Assembly (NCBI GenBank): GCA_977020255.1
Contig: CDROCS010005497.1
Coordinates: 62,001-126,000 of the forward strand
DNA from: Obrimoposthia wandeli
Lineage: Eukaryota
Reading direction: 5' to 3'
DNA length: 64,000 nucleotides
A program made the translations under genes and the position numbers. Numbering within the stretch: the first letter of the stretch is position 1; the number at the start of each line of letters is the position of its first letter. The notes beneath the pieces were generated by a model. It saw only the letters and a program-made list of their open reading frames with translations. It ran no database searches and was not told the DNA's origin. This document shows, in pieces, positions 5,737 to 53,616 of the stretch.

Positions 5737-8700
5737 TCATAATATTTCTCCTGTGATTATACTGTTCTGTATCTTAAGTCCATCTTTATCTGATTTCATT
5801 TTAGTTTTAAATATAGCTTCTACATCAGCATCAGACATTGCTGACTGCTCAAATACATAATCTCTATGATATGCATCTGATTCACTGTCAGTATATTCAC
5901 CAACTTGCCACACTTGACTAGTTTCATCCCCATCTAAATGATACGCCTCTCCATTACCGTTTGTACTGTGTGTAATACCTGAACTGTTACCTAATGATAA
6001 ATGTAGACTAGCACCATATCTTCTGTAGCAAAAGAAATTCCACTCATTATCTATTACAGATATTCCAGATGTTGTCTGAGTTGACTCGCTAGTGTTGTTC
6101 GAGCTTGACCAAGCTTGCAGATTCCTACTTGTTGCTCCAGCACCCATTATAAGTATCCTATTATAGGTACTATTACTATTTGCTACATTTCTAGTTAAAC
6201 AAGGCCTGTATACACCATCAGCATAGGTCTTTGGGTGCCACCAGCCATATATAGTAAAGTCTTGTTTACAGTCTATAATATCATATGGTAAATGTAAGCT
6301 TGATTGTGGTCTTGCACCTTCAACAAAAGGAGCAGCAAACGTATTCGCCTCAAGCGCCCAATTAGCTAGATAATATTCAGTCTGAGCCATGCTGTAAAAT
6401 CCAGCAAGAGACACATAACTAGCAGTAATTCCACTTACTGTTCTAGTAAGCCTATACCAACCGTTCTCTACTGGGATAGCAGTAATTGTTGTGTTTACAT
6501 TTGCAGAGGCAGATAGATACATATATGAGCCAAGAATTGTGATTGGAACATTATCTACTCTTTTAATGTAGCACGTAAAAGTCCATTTGGTACTTGTTGT
6601 TGTACCAATGTCACCACCATTCAAATAGCAGTTGTTATTTGCACCAGGATAGTACCTTGTAACCTTTCTGCCTCTAAATGTTACACTCTCATCTACTGAA
6701 GCAGTAGGACCACTATCTCCAGCCCAAGGGGTTGAAGTTTGACCGTGAGCAGCAACAACATTTGTTGTTCCTCTACCAATCCAAACACCACCTTCTGGGT
6801 TATCATACACCGTGTTGGCATCATTAGGAACTATATCTTTATAGTAATCTTTACCATCAGAACTAAAAGGAAAATGTTTCCCACCTAAGTAATTCTCAGT
6901 TTCAATAGAGCCAGTAATCAAGCCATCTGTTGTGATACTATGAGTACCTTTAGCTAGCTTTTTAACTTCATCATCTGATAATGTTTTTCCAAAAATAGAT
7001 ACATTTTTAAATAAAGCATCACCTCTATTCCATCCCCAACCTAAATATAGTATTGGTATTCTTGTAGCAAAAACAGAAGAAGTTGTTGCTACTGAGCCAA
7101 GCAAAACATCATTTACATATAAGTATTGAGTTGTTGTATTCCATGATATGGTGATTCTTATCCACTCATTTATAGGTACAACATATGAGCTTGTCAAGGC
7201 TGAACCCTCAAAATCATGCATATATAAATTACTAGATGCATTTATGTATATTCCCCACCAAATTCCACCAGCAGTTGCATTACTAAGCACAGTTGTATTA
7301 GGTGCCCTCTTGCAAAAGTAGTCAAATGAAACTGAACTAGTTGTTGATAGTTGAGGTTTTAGGCCAAGAGTACCAGCGCTTCTTGAGTCTTCAATAAACT
7401 CAGTTGCAGACGAAGCAAGTTCACATTGAATTAATGCTACATCATAACTACCATACCCTCCCATATTAAAGTACATACTTGCGCTTCCTGTTTTGGTACA
7501 TGTAGCAGTGGTTGTGTATTGCTTCCAGTCTTCTGTAATACTCATGCTCTGCCCACTCCATGAAGCACCACTGTGGAATGAAAGATTAAATAAACTACCT
7601 ATACTAAGTGATGAAGAGGCTCTAATCCATAAACTAAATGTGTATACTTGCCCTGCAACAACTAAGGGTTGAACACCATAAGCCATAAAATCAACAGGGG
7701 CACTCTCAGCAAATCTATGCCATCTGTGCATTCTCATAAATGGGTAAGTTTTACCATTAAGCTCAAATTGATTTGGTATTATTTCCTTAACCAGTCCTGA
7801 ATTTGGCCTATGGGGATTACCGTGCCACATTGTAGGAAATGAAGTAGCATTTATAGGAACTCGGACATCGTTATTAACAGAGTCGTGTACGGAGTATCCT
7901 TGTGACCCATCTTGATTACTATTATAGGTATGAAGAGAAAATGAATTTGTAGAATGCTTCTTAATAAAGTATTCAGTACCAGCCGTAACTCCACCGCCAG
8001 AGGTGCCAGCATTAAGAACATCATAACTTCTTATGGTTCTACCAACAGTAGATAAAGTAACAATATTATTAGCAACACTTCCTATTGTGCCTATACTATA
8101 ATCGACATTAGAGTTATAATTATTTGTATTATAAGTCCCATGCCCATTTCCAACATTAAAAGTTCTATTTGCAAGGCCAGGTATTAAATTAGTAGTTGCA
8201 GCTTCAACAGCTACACCATAATTTGTTTTTGTTGTATTTGTATCAGTAGTTGGATCAGTATCAACTCCTCTTGATACCATACTAGGAAGTTCAGTCAATT
8301 GAATATCTTTAAATAAAGTATTACCAGAATACGTTACAAGGTATACAAAACCACTTGTAAATGATGTTCCTATGGCAATGTTGCTTAATGTCTGAACTCC
8401 ATTAATCCACGCATTAACCACACCATTTTCTACAGATAACGAGGCATCATACCATGTCCCATATGTCATGTTAAAACCTAATGCTGAGCCAGAACTTGAG
8501 GTAATATAGGCCTGCACGCTATTAACCCATTTCTGCACACGATTATCATCAGTTCCAGATCTAATGATCCATTGATACCCCTCGCTCATTCCAGAACTAC
8601 TACTGTTTGGATTATAGAATCCAATACCAGGATGAGAGCTATTTGTATTAATTTTAAAGTTAATACAAAAGTTCTTGTATGAAGCCTCTGAAATGTTTGT

Positions 8701-12615: not shown

Positions 12616-12647
12616 ATTATAACTAACAAGACCTTCAGGCCTCCTTA
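12616..12647 (-). promoter_or_regulatory. Sigma70-like promoter upstream of adaptor/tail operon
   Basis: Minus strand TAAGG aggcc TGAAG gtcttgttagt TATAAT. Confidence 0.6.
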
Positions 12648-14366: not shown

Positions 14367-15115
14367 TATAACACCTCCACATCAATAGGGCCATCAATAA
14401 GATCAACACTTACTTTCTGTACCTCTTGTATTGTACCACCAGCACTTAACAATTTTTTCTGGTTAATAGCAATAAGTGTAAGCTGCTCATTCAGTGAATC
14501 TTGCATACTTTTACTCTCTTCACTTAAACCTAACTCTAACTCAACCTTAGTTTCTTCCGGAGGCTTAACATGTGTTAAAATCTCTTTAGCTGCTGTGATT
14601 CTATCCTTAGCATATATTGCCGTCTCCATCTCAGTTACAAGTGTGTTAACTGCCTTATAACGTGCACCTTGAAACATCAGGTACAAGGGCATATCACTTT
14701 GTACTAGAATCTGCCTTACAAGAGGACTTTTATGGTACCTACTTGCAGCACTAGTTAATTCTTTATACTTACTACTATCTGTAGGAGCATCTAGTCTATC
14801 TAGAACAAACTTATCCATGCCTCTTGATCGCTTATATGCATCAACTATACTAAAGTCTTCTGCCTCTAGGTATGAACAAAACTTAATTGCATTAATATAG
14901 TCCTTCATACTAACACTACCTTTAATCATTACATCTTGATACTCTACTAGAGTCCTCATAAAACCATCCAAACTAAAAGTAGGATCATTCTGAGCATCGT
15001 TAATTAACTTTGCAGTTGCCTCAGTAATTGTATCTCTCTTAGCAGGGAATGCAGTTTTTAAGTCAGTCACAGAAACTTCTGATACCTGTTTGCTTACTAC
15101 TCCAAATTTGCCCAT
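14366..15115 (-). CDS. Terminase small subunit-like (N4 gp69-like)
   Basis: Directly upstream of TerL with a 1-nt overlap; helical; KDRITAAKEILTHVKPPE. Confidence 0.6.
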   Translation of the reverse strand: MGKFGVVSKQVSEVSVTDLKTAFPAKRDTITEATAKLINDAQNDPTFSLDGFMRTLVEYQDVMIKGSVSMKDYINAIKFCSYLEAEDFSIVDAYKRSRGMDKFVLDRLDAPTDSSKYKELTSAASRYHKSPLVRQILVQSDMPLYLMFQGARYKAVNTLVTEMETAIYAKDRITAAKEILTHVKPPEETKVELELGLSEESKSMQDSLNEQLTLIAINQKKLLSAGGTIQEVQKVSVDLIDGPIDVEVL

Positions 15116-15116
15116 G

Positions 15117-15404
15117 TTATCTTTCCTTTAGGTCCACAGCTAGTGTGGCAATGTTTAATTTATTTAGTTTATCACATATAACAGGAGTTGATACTACTAA
15201 GTCAATACTATTATCAACACATTTAGTATATATCATCTCCGTTATAATATCGCCATCTTCATCTATATTGCTAGATAGGGTTGTAGCTCCCTCTATATTA
15301 GTGTAAATTACATGGTTTGATTCATCTATCAATCCTGTAAGATTCCTAAACCTATCGTCTATCATTATATTCATCATATCTTTCCTTATAACAAAGTATA
15401 GCAC
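15117..15404 (-). CDS. Hypothetical protein
   Basis: ORF in operon direction, preceded by a promoter-like motif at 15395-15426. Confidence 0.5.
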   Translation of the reverse strand: MLYFVIRKDMMNIMIDDRFRNLTGLIDESNHVIYTNIEGATTLSSNIDEDGDIITEMIYTKCVDNSIDLVVSTPVICDKLNKLNIATLAVDLKER

Positions 15405-15481
15405 GTTTAAGCTTAGTATTAGTTTATATTAAATTATTTGTGATTGTTTGACTTGAATAAGTCGTAGTTGTGTTGTGAGTG

Positions 15482-15572
15482 TGGAGGAGAATGTCAGAAT
15501 CGAACTGACACAGGCTATTAACCTGACCTGGGTTCAAACCAGGGCCGATACCTAATTTCGGTTGAATTCTCC
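15482..15572 (-). tRNA. tRNA-Ser(TGA)
   Basis: Cloverleaf; anticodon arm CCTGG-TTTGAAC-CCAGG; long variable arm; CCA encoded. Confidence 0.9.
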
Positions 15573-15573
15573 A

Positions 15574-15645
15574 TGGTGGAGTATATCGGTAACGATCCGA
15601 TTCGCCGTCCTTGCAAAGGACAGGTCCAGCCCATCTGGATACCCC
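15574..15645 (-). tRNA. tRNA-Ala(TGC)
   Basis: Loop TTTGCAA; G3.U70 wobble; CCA; short D region. Confidence 0.85.
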
Positions 15646-15653
15646 TTATAATA

Positions 15654-15743
15654 TGGAAGAGAGTTACGGTCTCGAACCGTATGCTGCGAACGCAACACGA
15701 TTTGCTTAGCAAGCAATCTCAGAACCTATCTGATTAACTCTCC
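15654..15743 (-). tRNA. tRNA-Ser(GCT)
   Basis: Loop TTGCTAA; long variable arm; CCA. Confidence 0.9.
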
Positions 15744-15745
15744 AA

Positions 15746-15822
15746 TGGTAGTGGTGAAGGGACTCGAACCCTTAAGACCTGGTTTCTAAGACCAGTATGT
15801 ATGCCAATTCCATCACACCACT
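15746..15822 (-). tRNA. tRNA-Leu(TAG), short variable loop
   Basis: CTGGT-CTTAGAA-ACCAG; A73; CCA; variable region only 5 nt. Confidence 0.85.
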
Positions 15823-15834
15823 AAGTGTACTGTA

Positions 15835-15910
15835 TGGTACCTCCTCTGGGATTTGAACCCAGAAATTTCGGATTTTAAGTCCGTTGCCTATGCCGTTCGG
15901 CTAAGAAGGT
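15835..15910 (-). tRNA. tRNA-Leu(TAA), short variable loop
   Basis: Loop CTTAAAA; A73; CCA; variable region only 5 nt. Confidence 0.85.
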
Positions 15911-15912
15911 AA

Positions 15913-16000
15913 TGGTGGATGCCCTGAGAGTCGAACTCAGCACGTGTCTTTGTTACGGGTTTACAATCCGCTTAAACCAACCGATAGTTTACTGACATCC
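15913..16000 (-). tRNA. tRNA-Tyr(GTA)
   Basis: Loop TTGTAAA; long variable arm; CCA. Confidence 0.8.
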
Positions 16001-16031
16001 AATTAATAGTTTATTGCCAAATTCCGGGCAT

Positions 16032-16064
16032 AAAAAAAGGAGCCTACCCTTTCGAGTGACTCCT
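16032..16064 (-). terminator. Intrinsic terminator (attenuator) upstream of the six-tRNA operon
   Basis: Minus strand AGGAGTC-AC-TC-GAAA-GG-GT-A-GGCTCCT hairpin running into U7. Confidence 0.85.
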
Positions 16065-16099
16065 ATGTGACTTATTATAAAAACTAGGTATACTAGCTT

Positions 16100-16183
16100 T
16101 CAAATTCCACGAGGAGTCCTCTGCCGTGACGACAGATATAAACTATAAGATACTAAGGCTAGTAATGTAGTTAAACTCTTCAT
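16100..16183 (-). CDS. Leader peptide B (27 aa, MKSLTTLLALVSYSLYLSSRQRTPRGI)
   Basis: AAAGGA RBS; Ser/Leu/Tyr/Ala-rich; contains GACTCCT complementary to the terminator 5' arm. Confidence 0.8.
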   Translation of the reverse strand: MKSLTTLLALVSYSLYLSSRQRTPRGI

Positions 16184-16226
16184 GATATTTTCCTTTTATT
16201 TTTGTCTTTCAATGACTGTTATTCCA

Positions 16227-16258
16227 ATTATAGTATAGATATACTTAATCTAACCTTA
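16227..16258 (-). promoter_or_regulatory. Promoter of leader B / six-tRNA operon
   Basis: Minus strand TAAGG ttaga TTAAG tatatctatac TATAAT. Confidence 0.7.
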
Positions 16259-16699
16259 ACGATCACTACTTCTTCTACCTACTTTAGCTTTTGCTTCAGT
16301 CACTAACTGATCTACATCCGACATCATAGCACTTAAATGCTCATAGTCTTCACTATGTACCCAGCATACTGTAGCACCTGGGATTATGAACTTCGGCTTT
16401 TCAGAATAAAGTGCCATAAATTCATCCCCACCAATTCTATAAACTTCTTGTAAATTCTCTGTATGCTGTAATGCGTTAGCAATTTGTTTTATCAACGCAT
16501 CTCCTGCAGCATACCCTTGTTCTCTATTAACCTCATGCAAACCTACAACGTCTATCATTGCAAGCCAGAAAGGTGTACTTATCATTTGTTGTAAGGTCTC
16601 TGCTTCGAAGTCATGTCTTTGTTTTAACCCTGTAAGATAATCATATCTGTACATCTTAACCATGTTCTTCCAATGGACAATTTCTTGTTCTTTTGTCAT
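16256..16699 (-). CDS. Stand-alone GGDEF (diguanylate cyclase-like) protein
   Basis: DYLTGL, MIDVVGLHEVN...GYAAGDALI and an intact YRIGGDEF motif. Confidence 0.85.
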   Translation of the reverse strand: MTKEQEIVHWKNMVKMYRYDYLTGLKQRHDFEAETLQQMISTPFWLAMIDVVGLHEVNREQGYAAGDALIKQIANALQHTENLQEVYRIGGDEFMALYSEKPKFIIPGATVCWVHSEDYEHLSAMMSDVDQLVTEAKAKVGRRSSDR

Positions 16700-16766
16700 A
16701 ATAATAATATTCCTAATGTTTATATTACCTATAATAACATTAAATAACTTATATACATCTTAAATT

Positions 16767-16840
16767 TGGTCCTCGATGATAGAATCGAACTATCGTTCCT
16801 CCCTAATCAGGGGAGTGCACTACCATTATACTAATCGAGA
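16767..16840 (-). tRNA. tRNA-Ile(GAT)
   Basis: CTCCC-CTGATTA-GGGAG; A73; CCA; unusual T at position 37. Confidence 0.75.
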
Positions 16841-16842
16841 AT

Positions 16843-16919
16843 TGGTCGGAAGGTCAAGAATCGAACTTGAATCTCTAGCTTTTCAGGCTAGCGCTCGTAA
16901 CCTAATGAGCTACCTTCCG
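16843..16919 (-). tRNA. tRNA-Phe(GAA)
   Basis: CTAGC-CTGAAAA-GCTAG; CCA. Confidence 0.9.
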
Positions 16920-16994
16920 TGGCGCCACATGAGAGAATTGAACTCTCCTTTCCGACTTGACAAGACGGCGTCCTAACCGATGGACGAATGCAGC
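16920..16994 (-). tRNA. tRNA-Asp(GTC)
   Basis: Loop TTGTCAA; G73; CCA. Confidence 0.85.
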
Positions 16995-17000
16995 TTAATA

Positions 17001-17074
17001 TGGATGAGACAAAAGGGCTCGAACCTTTGATAGGAGATTCAAAGTCTCCGGTGTTGCCACTACACTATATCTCA
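17001..17074 (-). tRNA. tRNA-Gln(TTG)
   Basis: GGAGA-CTTTGAA-TCTCC; CCA. Confidence 0.85.
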
Positions 17075-17077
17075 TTA

Positions 17078-17155
17078 TGGTGCCCAGTATTCGAGTCGAA
17101 CGAATAACCTTCTGCTTACAAGGCAGCTGCTCTAACCAATTGGAGCTAACCAGGC
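17078..17155 (-). tRNA. tRNA-Thr(TGT)
   Basis: Loop CTTGTAA; canonical D arm; CCA. Confidence 0.85.
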
Positions 17156-17158
17156 GTA

Positions 17159-17234
17159 TGGTCTAGATGGTAGGATTCGAACCTACGTGTTCCTCCGTCC
17201 AAGGGAGCCTGGAAACCATTCCCAGCACATCTAG
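17159..17234 (-). tRNA. tRNA-Pro(TGG)
   Basis: Loop CTTGGAC; C1-G72, A73; CCA. Confidence 0.85.
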
Positions 17235-17242
17235 TTTTATTT

Positions 17243-17318
17243 TGGAGTCCTTAGCCAGATTCAAACTAGCACCTCAGGGATTTGCAATCCCGCGCATTAA
17301 TCATTTTGCTATAAAGAC
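17243..17318 (-). tRNA. tRNA-Cys(GCA)
   Basis: Loop TTGCAAA; U73; CCA. Confidence 0.85.
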
Positions 17319-17320
17319 AT

Positions 17321-17398
17321 TGGAGGAAAGTATCGGAATCGAACCGATGTGTTCTAAATTCACAGCTTAGCGTCATTTCCAATTTTGACTACCCTTCC
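17321..17398 (-). tRNA. tRNA-His(GTG), atypical acceptor end
   Basis: CTAAG-CTGTGAA-TTTAG; CCA; no obvious G-1:C73 pair. Confidence 0.75.
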
Positions 17399-17445
17399 AA
17401 GATGAGGACATTTTAAGCCTGTCCTCTTAAGTACATAGTACTTAG

Positions 17446-17526
17446 CTCAACTGGTAGGACTCGAACCTACATAGGATTTCTCCCCAGATTAACAGTCTGG
17501 TGGACTACCGGATGTCCCACAGCTGA
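17446..17526 (-). tRNA. tRNA-Asn(GTT) with extended variable arm
   Basis: CCAGA-CTGTTAA-TCTGG; U1-A72, G73; 13-nt variable region with GGA-GAAA-TCC; CCA not encoded. Confidence 0.8.
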
Positions 17527-17549
17527 GCTAAACACTAAATTTCAGGCAT

Positions 17550-17586
17550 AAAAAAAGGGTTCAACCAAATTAATGATCAAACCCTT
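17550..17586 (-). terminator. Intrinsic terminator (attenuator) upstream of the nine-tRNA operon
   Basis: Minus strand AAGGGTTTGATCA-TTAATT-TGGTTGAACCCTT (13 bp with G.U pairs) running into U7. Confidence 0.85.
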
Positions 17587-17612
17587 CTTTCTCTACCAGT
17601 TGTTTTTACACA

Positions 17613-17702
17613 TTACAAGGTATAGACATGAAGGGTTCTCAGCACTGTAGGCTGATTATGGTTAACAATTCTAAAATCACAAGTAGTTGATAACGTGTTC
17701 AT
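17613..17702 (-). CDS. Leader peptide A (29 aa, MNTLSTTCDFRIVNHNQPTVLRTLHVYTL)
   Basis: AAAGGA RBS; contains GAACCCTTC complementary to the terminator 5' arm. Confidence 0.8.
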   Translation of the reverse strand: MNTLSTTCDFRIVNHNQPTVLRTLHVYTL

Positions 17703-17753
17703 GTATATTCCTTTTCTATTTATATGTTTTACTATTTCTCTTTAACATTCCCA

Positions 17754-17785
17754 ATTATAGCACTAGCTACCTTAAACAGACCTTA
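17754..17785 (-). promoter_or_regulatory. Promoter of leader A / nine-tRNA operon (extended -10)
   Basis: Minus strand TAAGG tctgt TTAAG gtagctagTGc TATAAT. Confidence 0.75.
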
Positions 17786-17947
17786 ACCATTAATAATCTT
17801 TAGTAATCTTCTTCGTTCTTGATGATACCTTAGCCATTCTGTCTTAAGCCAAAAGCCTTGAGGTAAGCAATACTCATCATCTAACTCATCTAGTAATACT
17901 TCAGGGTCAGTCTCATCCTCTACTACTTTACTTATAATAAAAAACAT
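17783..17947 (-). CDS. Small acidic hypothetical protein (54 aa)
   Basis: Manual translation MFFIISKVVEDETDPEVLLDELDDEY...; start overlaps the upstream stop. Confidence 0.45.
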   Translation of the reverse strand: MFFIISKVVEDETDPEVLLDELDDEYCLPQGFWLKTEWLRYHQERRRLLKIING

Positions 17948-18354
17948 TATACCCCTTTTGGCGCCACACTACCTACCGCTTTGTCCGTAGCAATAACATC
18001 CATATATACTTCCAACACAGCTTCCCTCTCTAATAAGAACAACTCTGTGCTACCACTAAACTTCTTTTCCGGAGTATACTGCCATTCTTTAAGCCTGTGA
18101 TGACACTCAGTCTCCTTAGTAAACACATCAGTTACTTCCTGATCTTTAACTATACGAATCTGCGGAGTAGTCCTATAAGCATCAAAGTAACTACCAACAA
18201 TCTGTAACAACCGTTCCTTACTACTATGCCCACTAGCCTTACCGACCTTATACACCAATACATCTTCAAATACGAACTCTAGTACGTAAAGTCTTTCGCA
18301 TTTGACCTTATCACCTTTAGTAATCTTAAAGAACTCAGCCATCATCAACCTCAT
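17947..18354 (-). CDS. T5orf172/GIY-YIG-like domain protein
   Basis: LYVLEF...VYKVGKAS...KERLLQI...ETECHHRL...TELF pattern. Confidence 0.55.
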   Translation of the reverse strand: MRLMMAEFFKITKGDKVKCERLYVLEFVFEDVLVYKVGKASGHSSKERLLQIVGSYFDAYRTTPQIRIVKDQEVTDVFTKETECHHRLKEWQYTPEKKFSGSTELFLLEREAVLEVYMDVIATDKAVGSVAPKGV

Positions 18355-18832
18355 CTTTCCTTTGTACTAACATTCCACCCAGCCTCTCCCACTCATCAGT
18401 AGCCAGCTTCAAGCCTTTAGTACTATTAGGTATAATAAGATAAGGATTAACCATATAAGTACCTCTCCTAACCCTCTTAACAATACCCAAATACTCCATA
18501 TGCTTATAATTCTTCTCAAGGCCCTTACTAATATACGCCGTGTAATTATCCCACTTATTAGGAGTAACTAAATTCGGATTATACTCTTTTATAATAGTCT
18601 GCTCAACTATACAATCCCTGAAGAACCTAAATACCGCATACTCACTTCGATTCAACTCCTCACATACCCCAATAATATCCATACTACACATCCCTAATCT
18701 CCTAGAGTATTTTCCATTCCCGGTAAGCATATAAGGCGGATACACAACCCTAACCTTATCCTTAACAGTAATAACAACCTCACTATCCTTATTAAGAGAT
18801 TCTATAATAGAATTCAATCCATCCATAAGCAC
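18335..18832 (-). CDS. Winged-helix/RepL-like DNA-binding protein
   Basis: GIVKRVRRGTYMVNPYL wing motif. Confidence 0.5.
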   Translation of the reverse strand: MLMDGLNSIIESLNKDSEVVITVKDKVRVVYPPYMLTGNGKYSRRLGMCSMDIIGVCEELNRSEYAVFRFFRDCIVEQTIIKEYNPNLVTPNKWDNYTAYISKGLEKNYKHMEYLGIVKRVRRGTYMVNPYLIIPNSTKGLKLATDEWERLGGMLVQRKDEVDDG

Positions 18833-19290
18833 TCCTTTAATACTAACTATACAACAACCCGGATTAAACCCTCCTTAGGTGCTCCAGTAACCTCCTTACT
18901 AGCGGGTGGTATTACACCTATAAACCTCCTAACTATAAGGTGCTCCAATAACCCTCTAGACCCCCGGGTTAACGGTAGTTCCTTTACTTAAGTAACTATA
19001 GGGCTAAGCACTCTAGGGGATTGCTCGCCACGATATACACGGAAATAGTTAAACATCCTACCTCCTAATTAACCTCCCAGGTGGTAAGGACAGAGCGGGT
19101 GGTTAAGAGTTTAATGTCTAAGGCTTGTTTAAGGCTTGTTTAAGTTTGGCTTATGTTGGGTGTTTTATAATTTTTTGTGTGTTGATAGTAAACTCTCCTG
19201 CTGCCGTCTAACCTAAAGGTACCCCCCGGAGTCTCTCCAAGGGATCCCTTATTGCTATGGAGTGATGATAAATCAAATCAAAGGATATAC
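18833..19290. repeat. Divergent non-coding region with short direct repeats
   Basis: AGGTGCTCCARTAACC at 18877 and 18938; AGCGGGTGGT at 18901 and 19094; tandem TAAGGCTTGTT; gene orientation switches here. Confidence 0.6.
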
Positions 19291-22200
19291 TATGAAAATA
19301 AACTTCAAAGATAAAGCCACTACAAAAGTAGACTGGCTTAGACGGGATCAATACGCTCCCTTCGCACTGGCGTTAGTGAAAGCACACACATCAGAGGATG
19401 ATGACTGTGACGTTGTAGCATTAGCTAAAACTATAGATGGTTTCCGCAATGGCGAAACAACTGCCAAAGGTAAAACACTATACGTACGTAACCTGTTAGG
19501 AGCTCTAAAGGCGATCTCCTCTGAGTTGGTAGATGCCATAATGGCCTCTCAAGACCCAACTGAAGCAAAGAATTTAGACAGTTTTTAACTGTCTGAATGT
19601 CTTTTTTTCTTTTACACCTGAGTCGATAGAAGCCCCTTTCCTTACACCTTGACACCATCAAGGGTCTTCTCTCGAACGTTCCTTCCTTACGTCATCCACT
19701 CTCCTATATAGTGCTGATAGTGATAAGCCTATGGGCTAATGACTTGACAACTCTAAAATTAAAAAGGATTTAAAATGGAAATGATTGGCGGAATTACAGG
19801 GTTATTATTGTTATTAGTGATTGTATGGTACTTCGGTAAAGCAATTAGTAAAGTAGGAACACTTGCTGAAAAAGCAGTGATTATAGGTAGTGAAATGGGT
19901 GACAATAGACTGGCTGTACTAAGTGCAGAGTCTAAGATTGCTAAGGCTACTAGGTTCGCAGAGTTAACAGTTGACAAAAAGATTGTTGATAAAGCTACTG
20001 CAAATGCAAAACTATTAGAATCTCTGGATTTCTAGTAGTTAAATTTAAATAAAGGAAATATTATGTACATTGAAACTATGACAGATTCAAGCACTCCAAA
20101 CCCTGATAAAATAGAGTACTAGGCCTTATGGTCTACTATTCTTCTGGTCAACGATAGGAGCACGAGGAAACGAGTGCATTATCAAATCTCCAAAACGATA
20201 GAAACATTACAAGTTGAGTCATCTCCACTCAAGTACAGGGAGAAATCTCTCTATAAAAACTAGAATGTACAATTATTGTACAATGGGGTGACAAGTGATG
20301 GTTCATTACGTAGGGGTATATACAGGATGGTAGGTAGGTTGTACAAAACCTTCACAAATTAAACATAATCCCCAAAACATCTCAAATTACCCTAATAATC
20401 AACACCTCAATAATAACGCACACCAACATACATAACTTAAAGGATACCTTATGACACAAGACCATAAAATACTACTAGACACAGTGATAGCATACCTAAA
20501 AGAGCCTAGCTCAGACGGTACATATAAAAGATTAGCACAACGTAATACACTAAGTGCTTTAGCTACTAACCAACTTATGGCTGGTACACAATACCCAAGA
20601 CAGCTAACTGAAGATGAACTAAATAACCATGTAGAGATAATATACTCTATTGATAATAAAGTCATGCAAGAACACTTTGAGAATAGTACTAAGGCTCAAG
20701 AGTGGTTAGAAAATAACCAAGACATTACTATAGAAGAAATTCTGTAGTATGCTCTACATACGTAACGATAATCAACTCCGCAAACTATGCCTTTAGAATA
20801 TACAAGGCTTCAACACATTAAAATAAAGGAAATAAGATGTTAATAAGTCAAGTTAACAAATTCATCAACTCAATGGGAAATTCTAAGCTGTTTGATACTA
20901 TCGTAGCTAATGGTGATATAGTGCTTAGTGACGAGCATACTATCACTGTCCAAGTAAATAAGTATGGCTGGAAAGATATTGCTGTCCTAGTCAAACTAGA
21001 AGACGATAGCATAATTACATTAGAGACATTAGCTAATCCCTTTGGAAAAGGCTATGATCTAATAGACTCTAGAGGATGTGAGTACAAAGATGTTGAAGAG
21101 CAAGATGCTTGGATAACAGGTAAACTACTGTCTCATAAACAAGTAGAATCCTTTGTGACTAATAGGGTATTTGGTACAGGGCCACTGTCTTGTATATCAT
21201 CTCCGGAAAACTACACGGAAGCAGACTTTGGACCTCAAGACCCTTATTATGTTCAAGATGGTAATGACATTCCTGATGAAGATGACTACAGTACTAATAG
21301 ACAAACAACTCTTACAGCATGGTATGCAGAAGAATCAAATAAGTATAAAAGAAAACAAAGGAACCTAGCATACCTAGCTACAAAAATGTATCAACTAGAA
21401 AATGATACTAGAGAAGACCTAATAAAAACAATAATAAAATTAGAGGATGAGCTTAATAAAGCTTACTATAGAGACTAACTAAAAGGAAATACAATGAGAA
21501 GATCAAGACGAAGTAGAGTAGGTACTAACAGACAAACTGTAGTCAACGCACTAGTTAACGCCTTAAAAGCGGATACTAAAGCTATGGAGAACCTACGAAG
21601 TAACAATAATAAGTATGTATTTGGACGTCTACTAAACAAGTGGCTAAACAACAAACAAGAGTCTGTGATTGACGTTTACGTCGATGAAGAAGCTAAAGAG
21701 ATGGTTAGTTACGCTATTAACATAGTCCATGCTCAAATAGTTAAAACAGAACTAGAAATGAAGCCTATTAAGTCTAAGATAATAGGACTACACTTCATAT
21801 TAGCTACAGCAAAAGATATAAATGGTAGATTCTACCTTAAAATGGATAAAGAATTATTAGAGGCTGCACTAGCAGAAGATAATATTACTTACCACAGTAA
21901 TGAAGAATACCGTTGGATTAATATCAAATATCCCGACTCTTGTAAACAAATCATAATTCAAGACATATAATACATTACAAACTACAGTACGCATTACAAT
22001 GTGTATTGTAGTACAAACTTAAAACTAAAGGAATAACATGTTCACAATAGTAGACCCACTTACAGGCTTAAATATTCAAGAAGATATAGTACTCTCAATA
22101 ATAGATATAACAAAACAGATTAATACTGGCAACATAGTTACTGTTAATTACAAAGGAACAGTTTATGATATCTTAGAGATAGTAGGAGATACCTTAGAAG

Positions 22201-34284: not shown

Positions 34285-34864
34285 TGAAATGTATATTAGC
34301 TCCGGAGTTCAAGAAAGGCTTAGTATCAATAGGTAAGTTCTTCCTTTTTCTGTTCATACTACTACCAATAGCACTTTTACTTCTAGGAGCAATCTTATTT
34401 CTTATGGGGTATGCAACATACCATCTATTACCCTACGGTGTCTCTGATTTCTTCCTTCAAGACCACAAAGCTTATGCAAGTTTAGAAGACATTATGCTTC
34501 ATATAGGTCTAGGACAGCTATTAGCTATCATTGTCTTTACGATAGTATTTGGAGTAAGTCACATAGTTTACACAGAAAGTAAAGAATCAATAAGACAAAA
34601 ACACAATTACAATCTATATAGATTCGAAGACGTAGAATATCCTATTTGGAGAACTCTACTAAGTTACATAATTGTATGCTCTCCACCTCCCAAGGACAAG
34701 TAATGAAAAAATGGATAATAATCTATAGATTTGGTTACTCAGATACAGACTCACAAATTATAGAATTTAACGGGAAGCCTACTAAAAAAGATGCTGCAAG
34801 TCTATTAGACATGGAACCTGAAAAGATTCTATACATCAAGAAGAAAAAGAAAAAGGACAAATAA
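34284..34864 (+). other. Membrane protein (34284-34703) and small basic ORF (34703-34864)
   Basis: ORFs with overlapping stop/start codons. Confidence 0.55.
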
Positions 34865-36003
34865 TGAGAAAATTACCAACCAGAGCTGAATGTCAAGCAA
34901 TAGTCGCTGCTGGTGATACATTCTTCTGTCAAGAAACAGTAGTCAACAGCTTCAAAGTAGAGCTATACTCATACCGTTTAGCAAACTACTCAGCTTTCAA
35001 TGACTTAAACGCCTACGAACTTCGAGGACTAACATTCGTCTACGATCCATCAACTAACGAGTGGAACAGGCATATCCTCCTAGACAAGTTCTTCAACTAC
35101 GCCCAAACAATCGGTTGGATGCCTGAAGACTTAGACCACAAAACAGTAGTCCGTACTCAAGACAAACTAGATGGTTCAGTTATCTCATTCGTTCTATTCC
35201 CAGACGGAACAATCAAAGCCAAATCAAAAATGTCATTCATATCTGAACAAGCAATCCTTGCTCAATCAATATATGACTCAAACCTTAACATCCAAAACGC
35301 AGTAGCTAGAGCAATCTTCAACGACGATACTCTAATCTTCGAGCTATGTAGTCCACTTAACCCAATCGTAGTAGACTACCAAGAAACAGACTTAATCCTA
35401 CTTCAAGTTCGAGACAATACTACAGGAGACTATGCCCTCAGCCTTGAGCCATACAGCACCTTCTACGGTCTTAAAATAGCTTCAACCTCTAAGTTATTGC
35501 TGCCAGAACTTCTTGCTTTAAAGCCCACTCTAAAGACCAACATAGAAGGCTGGGTTGTAACATTCTCAGACGGACAAATGGCCAAAGTTAAGACAGACCA
35601 CTACCTTTCTCTCCACGGCTTAATAGGCCCTGATGCCTTCAGAGAAAACCTACTAATTGCAACCATCATCAATGATTCCATCGACGATGTAATAGCAGCT
35701 CTGCCTGAAGGACAAAAGAAAACCAGAATAGTAGAGCTAACAACCAAAGTACAGCACAAATTCAACTTCCTAGTAGTTGACTTCAAAACTCTACGATATG
35801 CCTACTTCAATGTGTTCCATGAAGACCGAAAAGCTTTTGCAATAAGATATTCAAAAGCATCACCAGTATTCGGCCCAGTAATGAACACCCTGAATACTTC
35901 ATTTAGAGACGTTGAAGAAACTGCCTCCAAGGCAATCAAAGCTCTAATATTAAAACAAACAAACTCACTCTCAGATGCAAAAGAGTGGTTAAACAGGTTA
36001 TAA
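34864..36003 (+). CDS. RNA ligase 1 (T4 Rnl1-like)
   Basis: KLDGS adenylation motif, LIFEL, EGWVV, KVK. Confidence 0.85.
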   Translation: MRKLPTRAECQAIVAAGDTFFCQETVVNSFKVELYSYRLANYSAFNDLNAYELRGLTFVYDPSTNEWNRHILLDKFFNYAQTIGWMPEDLDHKTVVRTQDKLDGSVISFVLFPDGTIKAKSKMSFISEQAILAQSIYDSNLNIQNAVARAIFNDDTLIFELCSPLNPIVVDYQETDLILLQVRDNTTGDYALSLEPYSTFYGLKIASTSKLLLPELLALKPTLKTNIEGWVVTFSDGQMAKVKTDHYLSLHGLIGPDAFRENLLIATIINDSIDDVIAALPEGQKKTRIVELTTKVQHKFNFLVVDFKTLRYAYFNVFHEDRKAFAIRYSKASPVFGPVMNTLNTSFRDVEETASKAIKALILKQTNSLSDAKEWLNRL

Positions 36004-36039
36004 GATTTCTTATAGCCTTATAATAAATAAAGGATACTA

Positions 36040-37113
36040 ATGATAAGAGATAAGTTAATTATATGGTTCATCAATAACTGCCCAGAACACTACAAAGCAA
36101 TGATGTCCTCTAGGCACTACGTTTACCCTCTACTACCAAATCCTTTCCACGCAGAAGGTTCAGTTTGGACTCACACTATGATGGTTATGACTTACATTAT
36201 GGCCACAGGCATCGAAGATGATTACGAACGTAGAATCCTTCTAACAGCAGGCCTTCTTCACGACATCGGAAAACCTGAAGCTGAAGAACTAGTAGACGCT
36301 TCAACAACTAAGCCTATCCGTAACTCTTTCAAAGGCCACGAAGGCTTATCAACATTCTACTCAATAGGAATCCTTCAAAACCTAGTGAGAGACTTTCCGG
36401 AATGGTACTCAGAAAATGATAGTAAACTAATACTAACGCTAATCTCAACTCATGGCTTAGCCTTAGACCGAGGAAACTCCTTACTAGCTCGTTTAAGAAA
36501 AGAATTCAGAATAGCTGATAAACGTGGAGCAGTTAGAGCAGTTGATGAAAAACTCTTCTCTCAATACCAACCAAGAAAATATGCTAAACACTCACCAGAC
36601 GAAAACAAACACCTAGTTGTCTTAGTAGGCCTACCAAACGCAGGCAAGTCAACTCTAAGAAGCAAAGAGTACTCTGATTACCACTGTATTTCACGTGACG
36701 ATCTTATGATGGAATACTATGGAACAACAAACGGATACTGCTGGACTTACTCACATGTATACGCAGAAATACACAAAACACCAGAAGCCAAATCCTTATT
36801 TGAAAACTACTGGAACAAAGCCTTAAACGAGGCTAGAAAACATAATAAAATAATTATAGATATGACTATGCTGTCACTATCTAGTCGAAGACGAATGCTA
36901 CAACACTTTAACACTCATACACCAGTAGCAGTAGTTATATTACCAAACTTAGATGTGCTGTCTCAGAGAGAAGCTGCTAGAGCAAAAAAAGGTAAAACTA
37001 TCCCCCAATACGTCTACCAAAATATGATGAAATCTTTCGTAATGCCTATCAAGGAAGAAGGTTTCCAAAATATAACAATCAACTTACCAGGAAACAACTA
37101 TGAAATTAAATAA
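36040..37113 (+). CDS. HD-domain plus P-loop polynucleotide kinase-like protein
   Basis: HAEGSVWTHT, LLHDIGK, GLPNAGKST Walker A, IIIDMT. Confidence 0.8.
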   Translation: MIRDKLIIWFINNCPEHYKAMMSSRHYVYPLLPNPFHAEGSVWTHTMMVMTYIMATGIEDDYERRILLTAGLLHDIGKPEAEELVDASTTKPIRNSFKGHEGLSTFYSIGILQNLVRDFPEWYSENDSKLILTLISTHGLALDRGNSLLARLRKEFRIADKRGAVRAVDEKLFSQYQPRKYAKHSPDENKHLVVLVGLPNAGKSTLRSKEYSDYHCISRDDLMMEYYGTTNGYCWTYSHVYAEIHKTPEAKSLFENYWNKALNEARKHNKIIIDMTMLSLSSRRRMLQHFNTHTPVAVVILPNLDVLSQREAARAKKGKTIPQYVYQNMMKSFVMPIKEEGFQNITINLPGNNYEIK

Positions 37114-46795: not shown

Positions 46796-47060
46796 CACCA
46801 CTGGGATATTTTAGGAGCTTATCACCCACCAAAAGATAATCTCACAAGGCATTACTTAGTAATGTTTACTACAGCTAAGTCTATATCTAATAGCTTTAGT
46901 TGTGGTAAACTTATTATCGTAATCATTTTTACCCTCGGCCCGGACAGAGTTCCAATGCTGAGTCATTCTTATTTTATTGCACCACAATAAATTAAGTCCA
47001 TATACTTTTAACAATAGTTAGCAACTTCTCGGATACAGCTTAACTGCTGATCCACACTTC

Positions 47061-47136
47061 AAGTCTTGTCGACAGTTCGATCCTGTCTCGGGCCTCCAAT
47101 TAATGGCCCGATAGCTCAGCGGTAGAGTAAAGACTT
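47061..47136 (+). ncRNA. Circularly permuted tRNA-like gene (3' half precedes 5' half)
   Basis: 3' half AAGTCTT-GTC-GACAG TTCGATC CTGTC-TCGGGCC-T-CCA, then ATTAAT, then 5' half GGCCCGA-TA-GCTC AGCGGTA GAGT-A-AAGACTT. Confidence 0.65.
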
Positions 47137-47251
47137 ATAACTTATACTAAAACAAGTTGACTAAACATATAAACAAAGTAGAACAACATACTAATTAATA
47201 GACTGCACAAGTATTTGAAATTTGCCCGCAGTCAGCAAATTAAACATGAAA

Positions 47252-47287
47252 GGGAGTTAGGAACAGGAATAGTCCTAACTTCCACCA
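47252..47287 (+). ncRNA. CCA-ended minihelix
   Basis: 11-bp stem GGGAGTTAGGA/TCCTAACTTCC followed by ACCA. Confidence 0.4.
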
Positions 47288-47367
47288 GTCGTAGTAGCTC
47301 AGTTGGTAGAGCGCCTTCCCTGTAAAATGGAGAAGAGGTCGCAGGTTCAAGTCCTGCCGTCGGCACC
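47288..47367 (+). tRNA. Degenerate tRNA-like gene (Tyr-type loop CTGTAAA)
   Basis: Canonical D arm GCTC-AGTTGGTA-GAGC and T arm GCAGG-TTCAAGT-CCTGC; mismatched acceptor; enlarged anticodon loop. Confidence 0.5.
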
Positions 47368-50919: not shown

Positions 50920-52306
50920 ATGAACTACTTAAAAGCAGCATCAGCAATAGACGGATACAAAGCATCACACAAAGACCAATACCCAAAAGGTACAGACTAC
51001 GTATACTCTAACTTAACTCCAAGACACTCTAAGCACTTCGCTTACAAAGACTTCGACGGACGAGTAGTTGTATTCGGAAACCAATCAATGGTAAAATTCA
51101 TTCATGAATTATGGCAAGACACATTCTTTAACAAACCTGCTGACGAAGTAGTACCTGCACTATTCAGAAGATTATCAAACTACTCAGGGCATAAAGACGT
51201 ACAGCATTTCCATGACTTACACAGAAAAGGTTGCTTACCAGTAGTAATAAAATCCTTAGTAGAAGGTACTAAATCACCATTAGGTGTACCAACATTAACA
51301 ATTGCAAACACACACAAAGACTTTGCATGGATCGTTAACTACCTAGAAACAATCATCTCTGCAGAATCATGGCACACTATGACTTCAGCAACAGTATCAC
51401 ACCAATACAAGAAACTATTAAAACAATGGTCAGACTTAACGTGTGACGACGAATTACACTTACCATTCCAAGCCCACGATTTCTCAATGAGAGGACAAAC
51501 ATCTGTACACTCTGCAGCTAAATCTGGAGCTGGACATTTACTTTCGTTCGCTGGAACTGACACTGTACCTTCGATAGACTTCTTAGAGTACTACTACAAA
51601 GCTGACTGTGAACAGGAACTAGTAGGTTGCTCAATTCCCGCAACTGAGCATTCGACTATGACGACTGGAATCCAAGTAAACATGGACAAAGGTTTATCAT
51701 TACGAGATGCCGAAACAAAAGTATTCAAAAGACTATTAACTAAAACATATCCAACAGGACTATTTGCAGCAGTTTCAGACAGTTACAACTTCTGGGACAC
51801 ATTAACAATAACATTACCTAAACTAAAATCAGAAATTTTAGCAAGACCTATGACAGTAATTAGAAATATAGGAGATCCAACAGCTCCGGGTAAACTAGTT
51901 ATTAGGCCTGATTCTGGAAATCCTATTGATGTTATCTGTGGATTTAGAGTATTAGAAGGGGACCATACAGATGGAGTAAACAAAACACTAGTATTAGATA
52001 ATAACTATAACGTAATTTTAGACAATGGAGTGTACTATAAAGTAGATGGATATTATCACGATGATGGCTGCTGGGTAAACACTCACGCTAATGAAACCAA
52101 CATTACAGCTTCAGAAGCAAAAGGTGCTATCCAAGTATTATGGGAAATCTTTGGAGGAACTACGAACTCTAAAGGTTACAAAGTACTTGACCCTCACATC
52201 GGACTAATCTACGGAGACTCAATCACTCTTGACAGAGCTGACGAAATCTGTAAAAGATTAGAATCACAAGGCTTTGCATCTTCCAATATCGTATTTGGAA
52301 TTGGGT
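50920..52306 (+). CDS. nadV: Nicotinamide phosphoribosyltransferase-like protein, exon 1
   Basis: DGYKASH, HDFSMRG, IPATEHS, VSDSYNFW, IRPDSG, IYGDSIT; splicing restores NIVFGIGSYSFQ. Confidence 0.88.
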
Positions 52307-52590
52307 TAACTTATAATGGCCCCTTTAAGAAGTAATTCTTATCGAAAAACTTATTGAATTGCGGGAACTTTCGACAATCATAAACTACTAAACCTAGGTG
52401 GCGACACACTAGGTGGTGAGAATTAACTACTCTCAGTACAGTAAAAAGGTCTATGATCGATCAATCCGCAGCCAAGCCTCTCAGAAATGAGTGGAAGGTT
52501 CAGAGACTATCCCGAAAGGGAGTAGGCCCGTCAGGCCGAAGCAGTAAGCCCCTACTAAGGTAGGGTGATGATATAGTCCATTCAGTTACT

Positions 52591-52622
52591 TAAGTATTAA
52601 TTAAGTGCTAGTATGTTATACT
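52591..52622 (+). promoter_or_regulatory. Internal promoter for the intron endonuclease
   Basis: TAAGT attaa TTAAG tgctagtaTGt TATACT followed by a CAGGAG RBS. Confidence 0.6.
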
Positions 52623-52650: not shown

Positions 52651-53616
52651 ATGACAAACAAAGAAAAATTTATAGAAAAAGCAAATAGAAAGTACAGTAA
52701 TAAATTTGATTATTCACAGTTCACATACCTCAACGCTAAGACCAAAGGGACCCTAGTCTGCCCTACACATGGAGAATTTCTTCAAAACCCTGATAAGCAC
52801 CTTACATCTAAATATGGATGTCCAGTATGTGCATTAGAAGGAAGAATAGAAACATCTACAGGGGTATCTACAGTAGGCTGCCCTAAATATACTTGGGAAG
52901 AGCAGAAGAGTAGACTGGAAACTAGGTTTCCTTCACTTACATTCACCTGTGAAAAATATGAAGTAACTACTTCAACTGTAATAGGACTATGCCCAGAACA
53001 TGGGACGTTTGAAACAACATCAGCCACATTACTTAGAAAAAATGCTAAGTTTGGATGTAAGTCCTGTGGAGTTGCTGGAGCGAAAGCCACAAGAACCGGG
53101 ACTTTCAGAGAATTTATCTTACAAGCTTCCAAAATATTCAATAACAAGTACACTTATAAGTGTGATAATTACATGAATAAGAAGAGTATAGTTACCTGTA
53201 CATGTGATGTACATGGGGACTTTAATAAATCTGCTCAAAAGCATGTAGGGGGCCAAGGTTGTCCTAGATGTAATATTGATGCCCTTATACTCCAAGGAAA
53301 ACTCCCTGGAGGTTACTGTGAAACTATATTTTCTCGCAGCGATGCATTAAAAAATAAACCTGCTACAATCTACTACCTAAAAATGGGTAGCCTATACAAA
53401 ATAGGAATAACTATAAATTTAAAACGAAGACTATCAAACATATCCTCAAAAGCTTCTATACCTATAGAAGTGATAGACACCTTTGATACATCACTATATG
53501 AGGCATACCTTTTAGAGCAACAGCTTCTAGAAAAGTATGCAGAGTATAGGACAAGTAATGAATTCTCGACAGAGCTTTTTACTTGGGATGTACTAGAAGG
53601 AAAAATACTTAAGTAA
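52651..53616 (+). CDS. Intron-encoded homing endonuclease (CPxHG zinc-ribbon repeats plus GIY-YIG-like C-terminus)
   Basis: Three CPxHGxF...GCPxC repeats; IYYLK...LYKIGIT...RRL. Confidence 0.8.
   Translation: MTNKEKFIEKANRKYSNKFDYSQFTYLNAKTKGTLVCPTHGEFLQNPDKHLTSKYGCPVCALEGRIETSTGVSTVGCPKYTWEEQKSRLETRFPSLTFTCEKYEVTTSTVIGLCPEHGTFETTSATLLRKNAKFGCKSCGVAGAKATRTGTFREFILQASKIFNNKYTYKCDNYMNKKSIVTCTCDVHGDFNKSAQKHVGGQGCPRCNIDALILQGKLPGGYCETIFSRSDALKNKPATIYYLKMGSLYKIGITINLKRRLSNISSKASIPIEVIDTFDTSLYEAYLLEQQLLEKYAEYRTSNEFSTELFTWDVLEGKILK

Follow-up and report, generated by a model that had tools for sequence, protein, structure and literature searches.

Leader frames that mirror the downstream transfer RNA genes: candidate ribosome-mediated attenuators of phage tRNA arrays

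How phages control their own transfer RNA (tRNA) genes is, to our knowledge, almost unstudied, the debate so far having turned on why such genes are carried at all. A stretch of 64,000 nucleotides (nt) from contig CDROCS010005497.1 (positions 62,001 to 126,000 of the forward strand; Obrimoposthia wandeli assembly GCA_977020255.1), referred to below as the window, raises this question in a concrete form: what is the role of a 29-codon frame that lies between a promoter-like motif and a hairpin, in front of nine phage tRNA genes? A first-pass annotation had proposed a leader-peptide attenuator whose codons sense the tRNAs encoded downstream. Having compared this locus with related arrays, we consider it likely that each such module is a ribosome-mediated transcription attenuator gating a phage tRNA array.

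The window holds two modules on the minus strand, module A (17785-17537) and, 1.5 kilobases downstream, module B (16258-16019). Module A comprises the following features:

17754 to 17785, minus strand: promoter-like motif, two TAAG repeats followed by a -10-like hexamer (exact motif match)
17708 to 17715, minus strand: AAGGA-type Shine-Dalgarno site of leader A, read from the sequence
17613 to 17702, minus strand: leader frame A, ATG start, 29 codons and a stop, with all nine amino-acid types of array A present
17643 to 17699, minus strand: sensor part of leader A, codons 2-20, of which 14 of 19 specify array amino acids
17623 to 17643, minus strand: segment 2 in the tail of leader A, a conserved RNA block (conserved alignment columns) predicted to pair with the start region or the terminator 5' arm
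17550 to 17586, minus strand: predicted intrinsic terminator A (segments 3 and 4), hairpin plus U7 (folding; compensatory changes across modules)
17537 to 17555, minus strand: junction motif between the U run and the first tRNA, common to modules A and B (2 exact hits in the window against 0.13 expected)
16767 to 17526, minus strand: tRNA array A, nine genes, Asn His Cys Pro Thr Gln Asp Phe Ile (ARAGORN, Rfam)

The leader, its ribosome-binding site, the promoter, the hairpin with seven T, and the nine tRNAs all lie where the first-pass annotation had put them, and its count for codons 6-19, which contain all nine array amino acids with 12 of the 14 codons belonging to the set, is correct. In the tail of the leader, array-type codons make up only three of nine, against 14 of 19 in codons 2-20. 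Full coverage with enrichment equal to that of leader A was found in 1 of 521 other small frames and in a fraction of 8.6e-4 of protein segments of the same length. Under strict wobble rules, the Pro codon CCT and two Thr codons ACT require a U34 that reads U. The hairpin runs from 17586 to 17555 and the seven T from 17556 to 17550, with a core stem of -15.7 kcal/mol by folding; the possible extension of the stem into the T run caused a simple terminator scanner to miss this terminator. The gap from the U run to the first tRNA, 23 nt in module A and about 30 nt in module B, is too short for a promoter. Array A opens with a tRNA-Asn (anticodon GTT; 17445-17526, minus strand) of 82 nt, whose long variable arm is atypical of this tRNA species.

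At about 35% identity to the TerL proteins of N4-like podophages, the TerL of this phage marks it as a distant relative of that group. When the whole region was searched as DNA against cultured phages, the only similarity found was to tRNAs, and TerL-anchored loci held no tRNAs. Scanning viral contigs for the junction motif was rejected as a route to relatives, most hits being unrelated; one unrelated contig (L055, 5000-5240) has a promoter-like site and a long hairpin with U8, followed by the motif immediately 5' of a tRNA-Tyr, and no leader frame. Relatives were recovered by anchoring on a 249-residue protein that adjoins the terminase, in IMG/VR, JGI metagenomes, ENA, and Logan. This gave 12 further independent arrays at the same place in related uncultured phages (loci labeled L plus a number), for a total of 14 modules with A and B. 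In each of the 12, the first tRNA is preceded, at a distance of 67-115 nt, by a small frame that has a ribosome-binding site; in the alignment of the 14 modules, a TAAG-type promoter motif lies directly upstream of every leader and an AAGGA-type site is kept 6-9 nt ahead of the start codon. In the phages whose anchor protein is most similar (L127-L132), the array position is occupied by other genes, and the modules therefore come and go.

Across this family, the composition of the leader follows that of the array. The amino-acid types of the array are completely covered by its own leader in 14 of 14 modules, with arrays spanning from 2 to 19-20 types. Every leader was scored for every array, with the phage proteome as reference; the z scores for own arrays summed to 34.4, mismatched pairs averaging 1.0, and none of 500,000 permutations of arrays among leaders equaled the score or the coverage (p <= 2e-6). 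A strictly cognate codon is present in the own leader for 103 of 110 anticodons, and a codon of the same box for all 110. Cognate codons cluster 5' of segment 2 (78/96, compared with 15/52 in the tail; p = 4e-10, five clean-terminator modules), and the order of residues is not conserved among leaders. Three unrelated phages with tRNA clusters displayed no comparable match.

The most direct form of this evidence comes from homologous leaders that precede different arrays, where the first-pass annotation had expected composition to track tRNA content, as it does: in four independent pairs, residues of types private to one array number 35 in that array's own leader and six in the partner's. Module A and L218, for example, have an identical 21-nt tail block. 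The private types are Cys, Asp, Ile, and Thr for A and Ala and Tyr for L218; leader A has seven residues of its own private types and none of L218's, and the L218 leader has five of its own and none of A's. ARAGORN defaults miss several tRNA-like genes with degenerate T arms (gaps inside arrays, L137, L143, L150, L174, and L196), and leader composition predicted some of those missed, such as Arg in L174 and L196.

Module B is built like module A, with a promoter motif, a Shine-Dalgarno site, a frame in the range of 27-29 codons, a hairpin with U7, and tRNAs, and the promoter pattern common to both spans 37 nt. Its features, with the sites of the promoter-like motif in the whole window, are:

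16227 to 16258, minus strand: promoter-like motif of module B (motif match)
16100 to 16183, minus strand: leader frame B, 27 codons, with a core of Leu, Ser, Tyr, and Ala codons
16032 to 16064, minus strand: predicted intrinsic terminator B, hairpin plus U7 (folding)
15482 to 16000, minus strand: tRNA array B, Tyr Leu Leu Ser Ala Ser (ARAGORN)
1699-1730, 5756-5787, 12616-12647, 15395-15426, 16227-16258, 16731-16762, and 17754-17785, minus strand, and 52591-52622, plus strand: TAAG-repeat motif sites

Leader B draws on both Leu and both Ser codon boxes, as does array B, and the 5' arm of terminator B pairs with codons 21-25 of its leader (p = 0.001). The 19-nt junction motif of module A recurs after terminator B, before the tRNAs. 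The tRNA-Tyr of array B (16000..15913) was found only with a relaxed ARAGORN threshold; array B, like array A, starts with a long-arm tRNA behind the common junction motif. The motif TAAG-N7-TAAG-N11-TAYAMT occurs eight times in the window against 0.39 expected, with one copy directly 3' of each of the two arrays and a spacing unlike that of a standard -35/-10 promoter.

The tail of the leader is, judging from the alignment, conserved as RNA rather than as a peptide block. Aligned in nine modules, the block starts at codon position 1 in five and at codon position 3 in four, and it is thus read in two frames, with close homologues on both sides (the frame in L218 differs from that in A). The terminator stem carries compensatory changes at 7 of 13 pairs across nine modules, and a hairpin with U6-7 precedes the tRNAs in A, B, L139, L166, L167, L179, L174, L216, and L218. 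In the five modules tested, the terminator 5' arm finds its best leader partner at codons 20-25 (24-28 in L139), with p = 0.29, 0.001, 0.10, 0.0005, and 0.015 in the arm-leader duplex-energy test, significant in three of the five but not in module A; duplex energies were compared, rather than one column-by-column structure, because the register of this 2:3 helix shifts between modules. Pairing of the start region with the tail was found in seven of seven modules (combined p = 8e-9). In the pairing model, segment 1 is hence the translation start region, and its pairing with the tail would supply the third (1:2) helix of the classical scheme. A masking model, in which a ribosome-sized stretch was blocked at each codon in turn, predicts that the tail holds the arm with the A site at codons 1-17 and that the arm is released at about codons 18-28.

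From these features we infer that the leader is translated, that transcription can end at the hairpin, and that stalling opens the switch. Transcription would start at the phage promoter motif and a ribosome would load on the short leader, where codons 2 to about 20 would probe each tRNA species encoded by the array. If decoding is quick, the ribosome would cover the tail (segment 2) as the terminator is made, such that the hairpin forms and transcription ends before the tRNAs. A stall at any sensor codon, where a tRNA is scarce, uncharged, or damaged, would leave segment 2 free to pair with the terminator 5' arm, and polymerase would continue into the array. Fresh phage tRNAs would then end the stall, closing the switch again.

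A simpler account would be a chance frame beside an ordinary leaky terminator that ends an upstream transcription unit, given that short frames are plentiful in AT-rich DNA and that simple scans of this region give no more promoters and terminators than chance would. We regard this as scarcely credible because it is contradicted by the coverage, permutation, and homologous-pair results: the layout recurs in 14 modules with 100% coverage, at a per-module chance level, judged from other small frames and random protein segments, of 1e-2 down to <5e-6, and with a dedicated promoter motif directly 5' of each leader. It also appears very improbable that the peptide product of the small frame has a separate function and resembles the array only through codon preferences common to phage genes and tRNAs. 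The good ribosome-binding sites would suit such a peptide, as would gene calls for some of the frames in public assemblies, such as that of a 31-residue product at L218 7169-7264. However, the enrichment is measured relative to the phage's own proteome and, from one homologous leader to another, shifts with the array; such coverage is seldom matched by other small frames or protein segments, and neither the unconserved residue order nor a conserved tail translated in two frames is what such a peptide would lead one to expect.

A different kind of alternative accepts a translated sensor matched to the array and gives it another output, be it Rho-dependent polarity, processing or stability of the precursor, or the opposite polarity, in which finished translation opens the array. 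Several observations weigh against attenuation, and the following would suit such an output. The five class II modules (L137, L140, L143, L150, and L196) have two hairpins without a clean U run; in the masking model these rearrange only with a ribosome on the last codons or the stop, and masking of the stop codon reshuffles them in a way to which no output can be assigned. In module A, the 9-base-pair (bp) complement on which the first-pass annotation had based its 2:3 antiterminator does exist, between leader codons 22-25 and the terminator 5' arm, but the helix is no better than those of codon shuffles (p = 0.24-0.29). The family-wide test for a contiguous helix reaches only a combined p = 0.009, and it is the family as a whole, and not module A by itself, that makes a convincing case for the antiterminator helix. 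In addition, the model at equilibrium predicts upstream pairing of the arm even when no ribosome is present.

Other points against attenuation concern how the modules are transcribed and how one of them is composed. A strong sigma-70-like promoter (11/12, the best of the region) lies at 16074-16103 on the minus strand, between the leader B stop and terminator B, and transcripts from it would carry terminator B and not segment 2. A relative encodes a single-subunit RNA polymerase; were the modules transcribed by such an enzyme, ribosome coupling would be poor. The L140 leader covers its array without enrichment (z = -0.1), having all twenty amino acids where the array has only ten or eleven tRNA types. 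Against another output stand the covarying, GC-rich stems with U6-7 directly before the tRNAs in A, B, L139, L166, L174, L216, and L218, and the module in L138, where a hairpin with U6 behind it is in competition with a helix overlapping the stop codon, giving the classical polarity. Opposite polarity would furthermore shut off supply when tRNAs run short. On balance, we judge an output other than attenuation to be unlikely.

Attenuators that sense more than one amino acid are familiar from amino-acid operons, such as ilvGMEDA (Ile, Leu, and Val codons) and thr (Thr and Ile codons). The phage modules have in common with these a short leader frame with regulatory codons, a predicted intrinsic terminator before the regulated genes, a segment that can pair with the terminator 5' arm, and the apparent sensing of several amino acids. 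They differ in that the regulated genes are tRNAs rather than enzymes, that each leader samples 4 to 20 amino acids, most of them through one to four dispersed codons instead of runs, and that the codon set mirrors the downstream anticodons. The first-pass annotation had described the geometry as being of the trp/his/thr type; the order of promoter, sensor, terminator, and array does recur in all 14 modules, but exact trp geometry does not hold. Segment 2 lies inside the frame, with the stop 5-9 codons past it, and segment 1 is predicted to be the start region rather than the regulatory codons. The trp, his, and phe leaders, which sense a single amino acid each, by contrast have tandem identical codons, where the modules have diverse ones, and a stop next to segment 2, with the common principle that a stall favors the antiterminator and the ribosome reads the supply of charged tRNA. 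A theory of multivalent leader-peptide attenuators has been published (PMC1183508).

T-box riboswitches also report the state of tRNA through a choice between terminator and antiterminator; unlike the modules described here, they work without translation by direct binding of one uncharged tRNA, and their targets are synthetase and amino-acid genes. Searches of 14500-19500 against Rfam at E <= 1 gave tRNAs only, with no match to a T-box or to the Thr, His, Leu, Trp, and Phe leader families, and at the gathering score the whole window yielded only tRNA hits and one group I intron, with no T-box. Work of the 1980s reportedly found E. coli tRNA-Phe genes to be preceded by attenuator-like leaders with cognate codons, a case that would concern one tRNA and one amino acid in a bacterium. 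Phage tRNA arrays have been discussed as codon supplements or as an escape from tRNA-cleaving defenses (PMC10264068, PMC11464382); the arrays in those papers have the same cargo and likely the same selective pressures, and their regulation is not treated there. Neither PMC10264068 nor PMC6409571 mentions a leader, attenuator, terminator, or promoter, and full-text literature searches turned up no account of phage tRNA arrays preceded by leader frames or attenuators, in keeping with the first-pass annotation, which knew of none. We read the modules as a multivalent ribosome-mediated attenuator applied to tRNA genes, of which we found no earlier description.

The genes around the arrays were also inspected. 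Between the two arrays (16256-16699, minus strand) lies the gene for a 147-residue protein with a partial GGDEF domain (PF00990, E = 2e-12), which has a counterpart of equal length in the closest relative, L127, a phage without arrays. A protein with a T5orf172 domain (17947-18354, minus strand) is encoded just upstream of the arrays, or of their would-be place, in nearly all relatives, and it may bear on the coming and going of the modules. Elsewhere in the window, tRNA-like halves in unusual order occur near 47050-47140, within 47030-47367 (plus strand), and ARAGORN assigns a four-base anticodon to a tRNA at 47288-47367 (plus strand). The group I intron (52297-52600, plus strand; Rfam, 77 bits) follows a nicotinamide/nicotinate phosphoribosyltransferase-like frame at 50920-52335, and the frame 3' of it (52651-53616, plus strand), which has DUF723 and T5orf172 domains, probably encodes the homing endonuclease of the intron.

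What the leaders might respond to during infection is suggested by another group of genes. The window encodes an Rnl1-type RNA ligase (PF09511) adjoining an HD and P-loop kinase protein (34864-37113, plus strand), as well as a second RNA ligase (PF09414; 48604-49632, plus strand), and together these resemble a tRNA repair kit. Enzymes of these kinds mend cleaved tRNAs in T4. Their presence in the genome makes tRNA damage a reasonable pressure, without thereby establishing damage as the trigger, and the sequence does not tell cleavage of tRNAs by host nucleases from plain shortage. It is a tentative possibility, which we would not favor at present, that the leaders are damage sensors in an arms race, registering when host tRNAs are cleaved or depleted through anticodon nucleases or infection-triggered decay and firing the matching replacement array only then. 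If so, damage-sensing leaders and tRNA-repair-type enzymes would together form an inducible, self-limiting counter-defense.

Because the leader predicts the content of the array, the attenuator reading can be checked by comparison alone, and the same rule provides a simple annotation aid for finding regulated arrays and tool-missed tRNAs in metagenomic phages. If the reading is correct, leader-peptide attenuation, known from amino-acid metabolism with one to three amino acids sensed, would also act on tRNA genes, with as many as twenty sensed. There would then be at least one phage lineage that measures decoding capacity directly and adjusts its tRNA supply to it.
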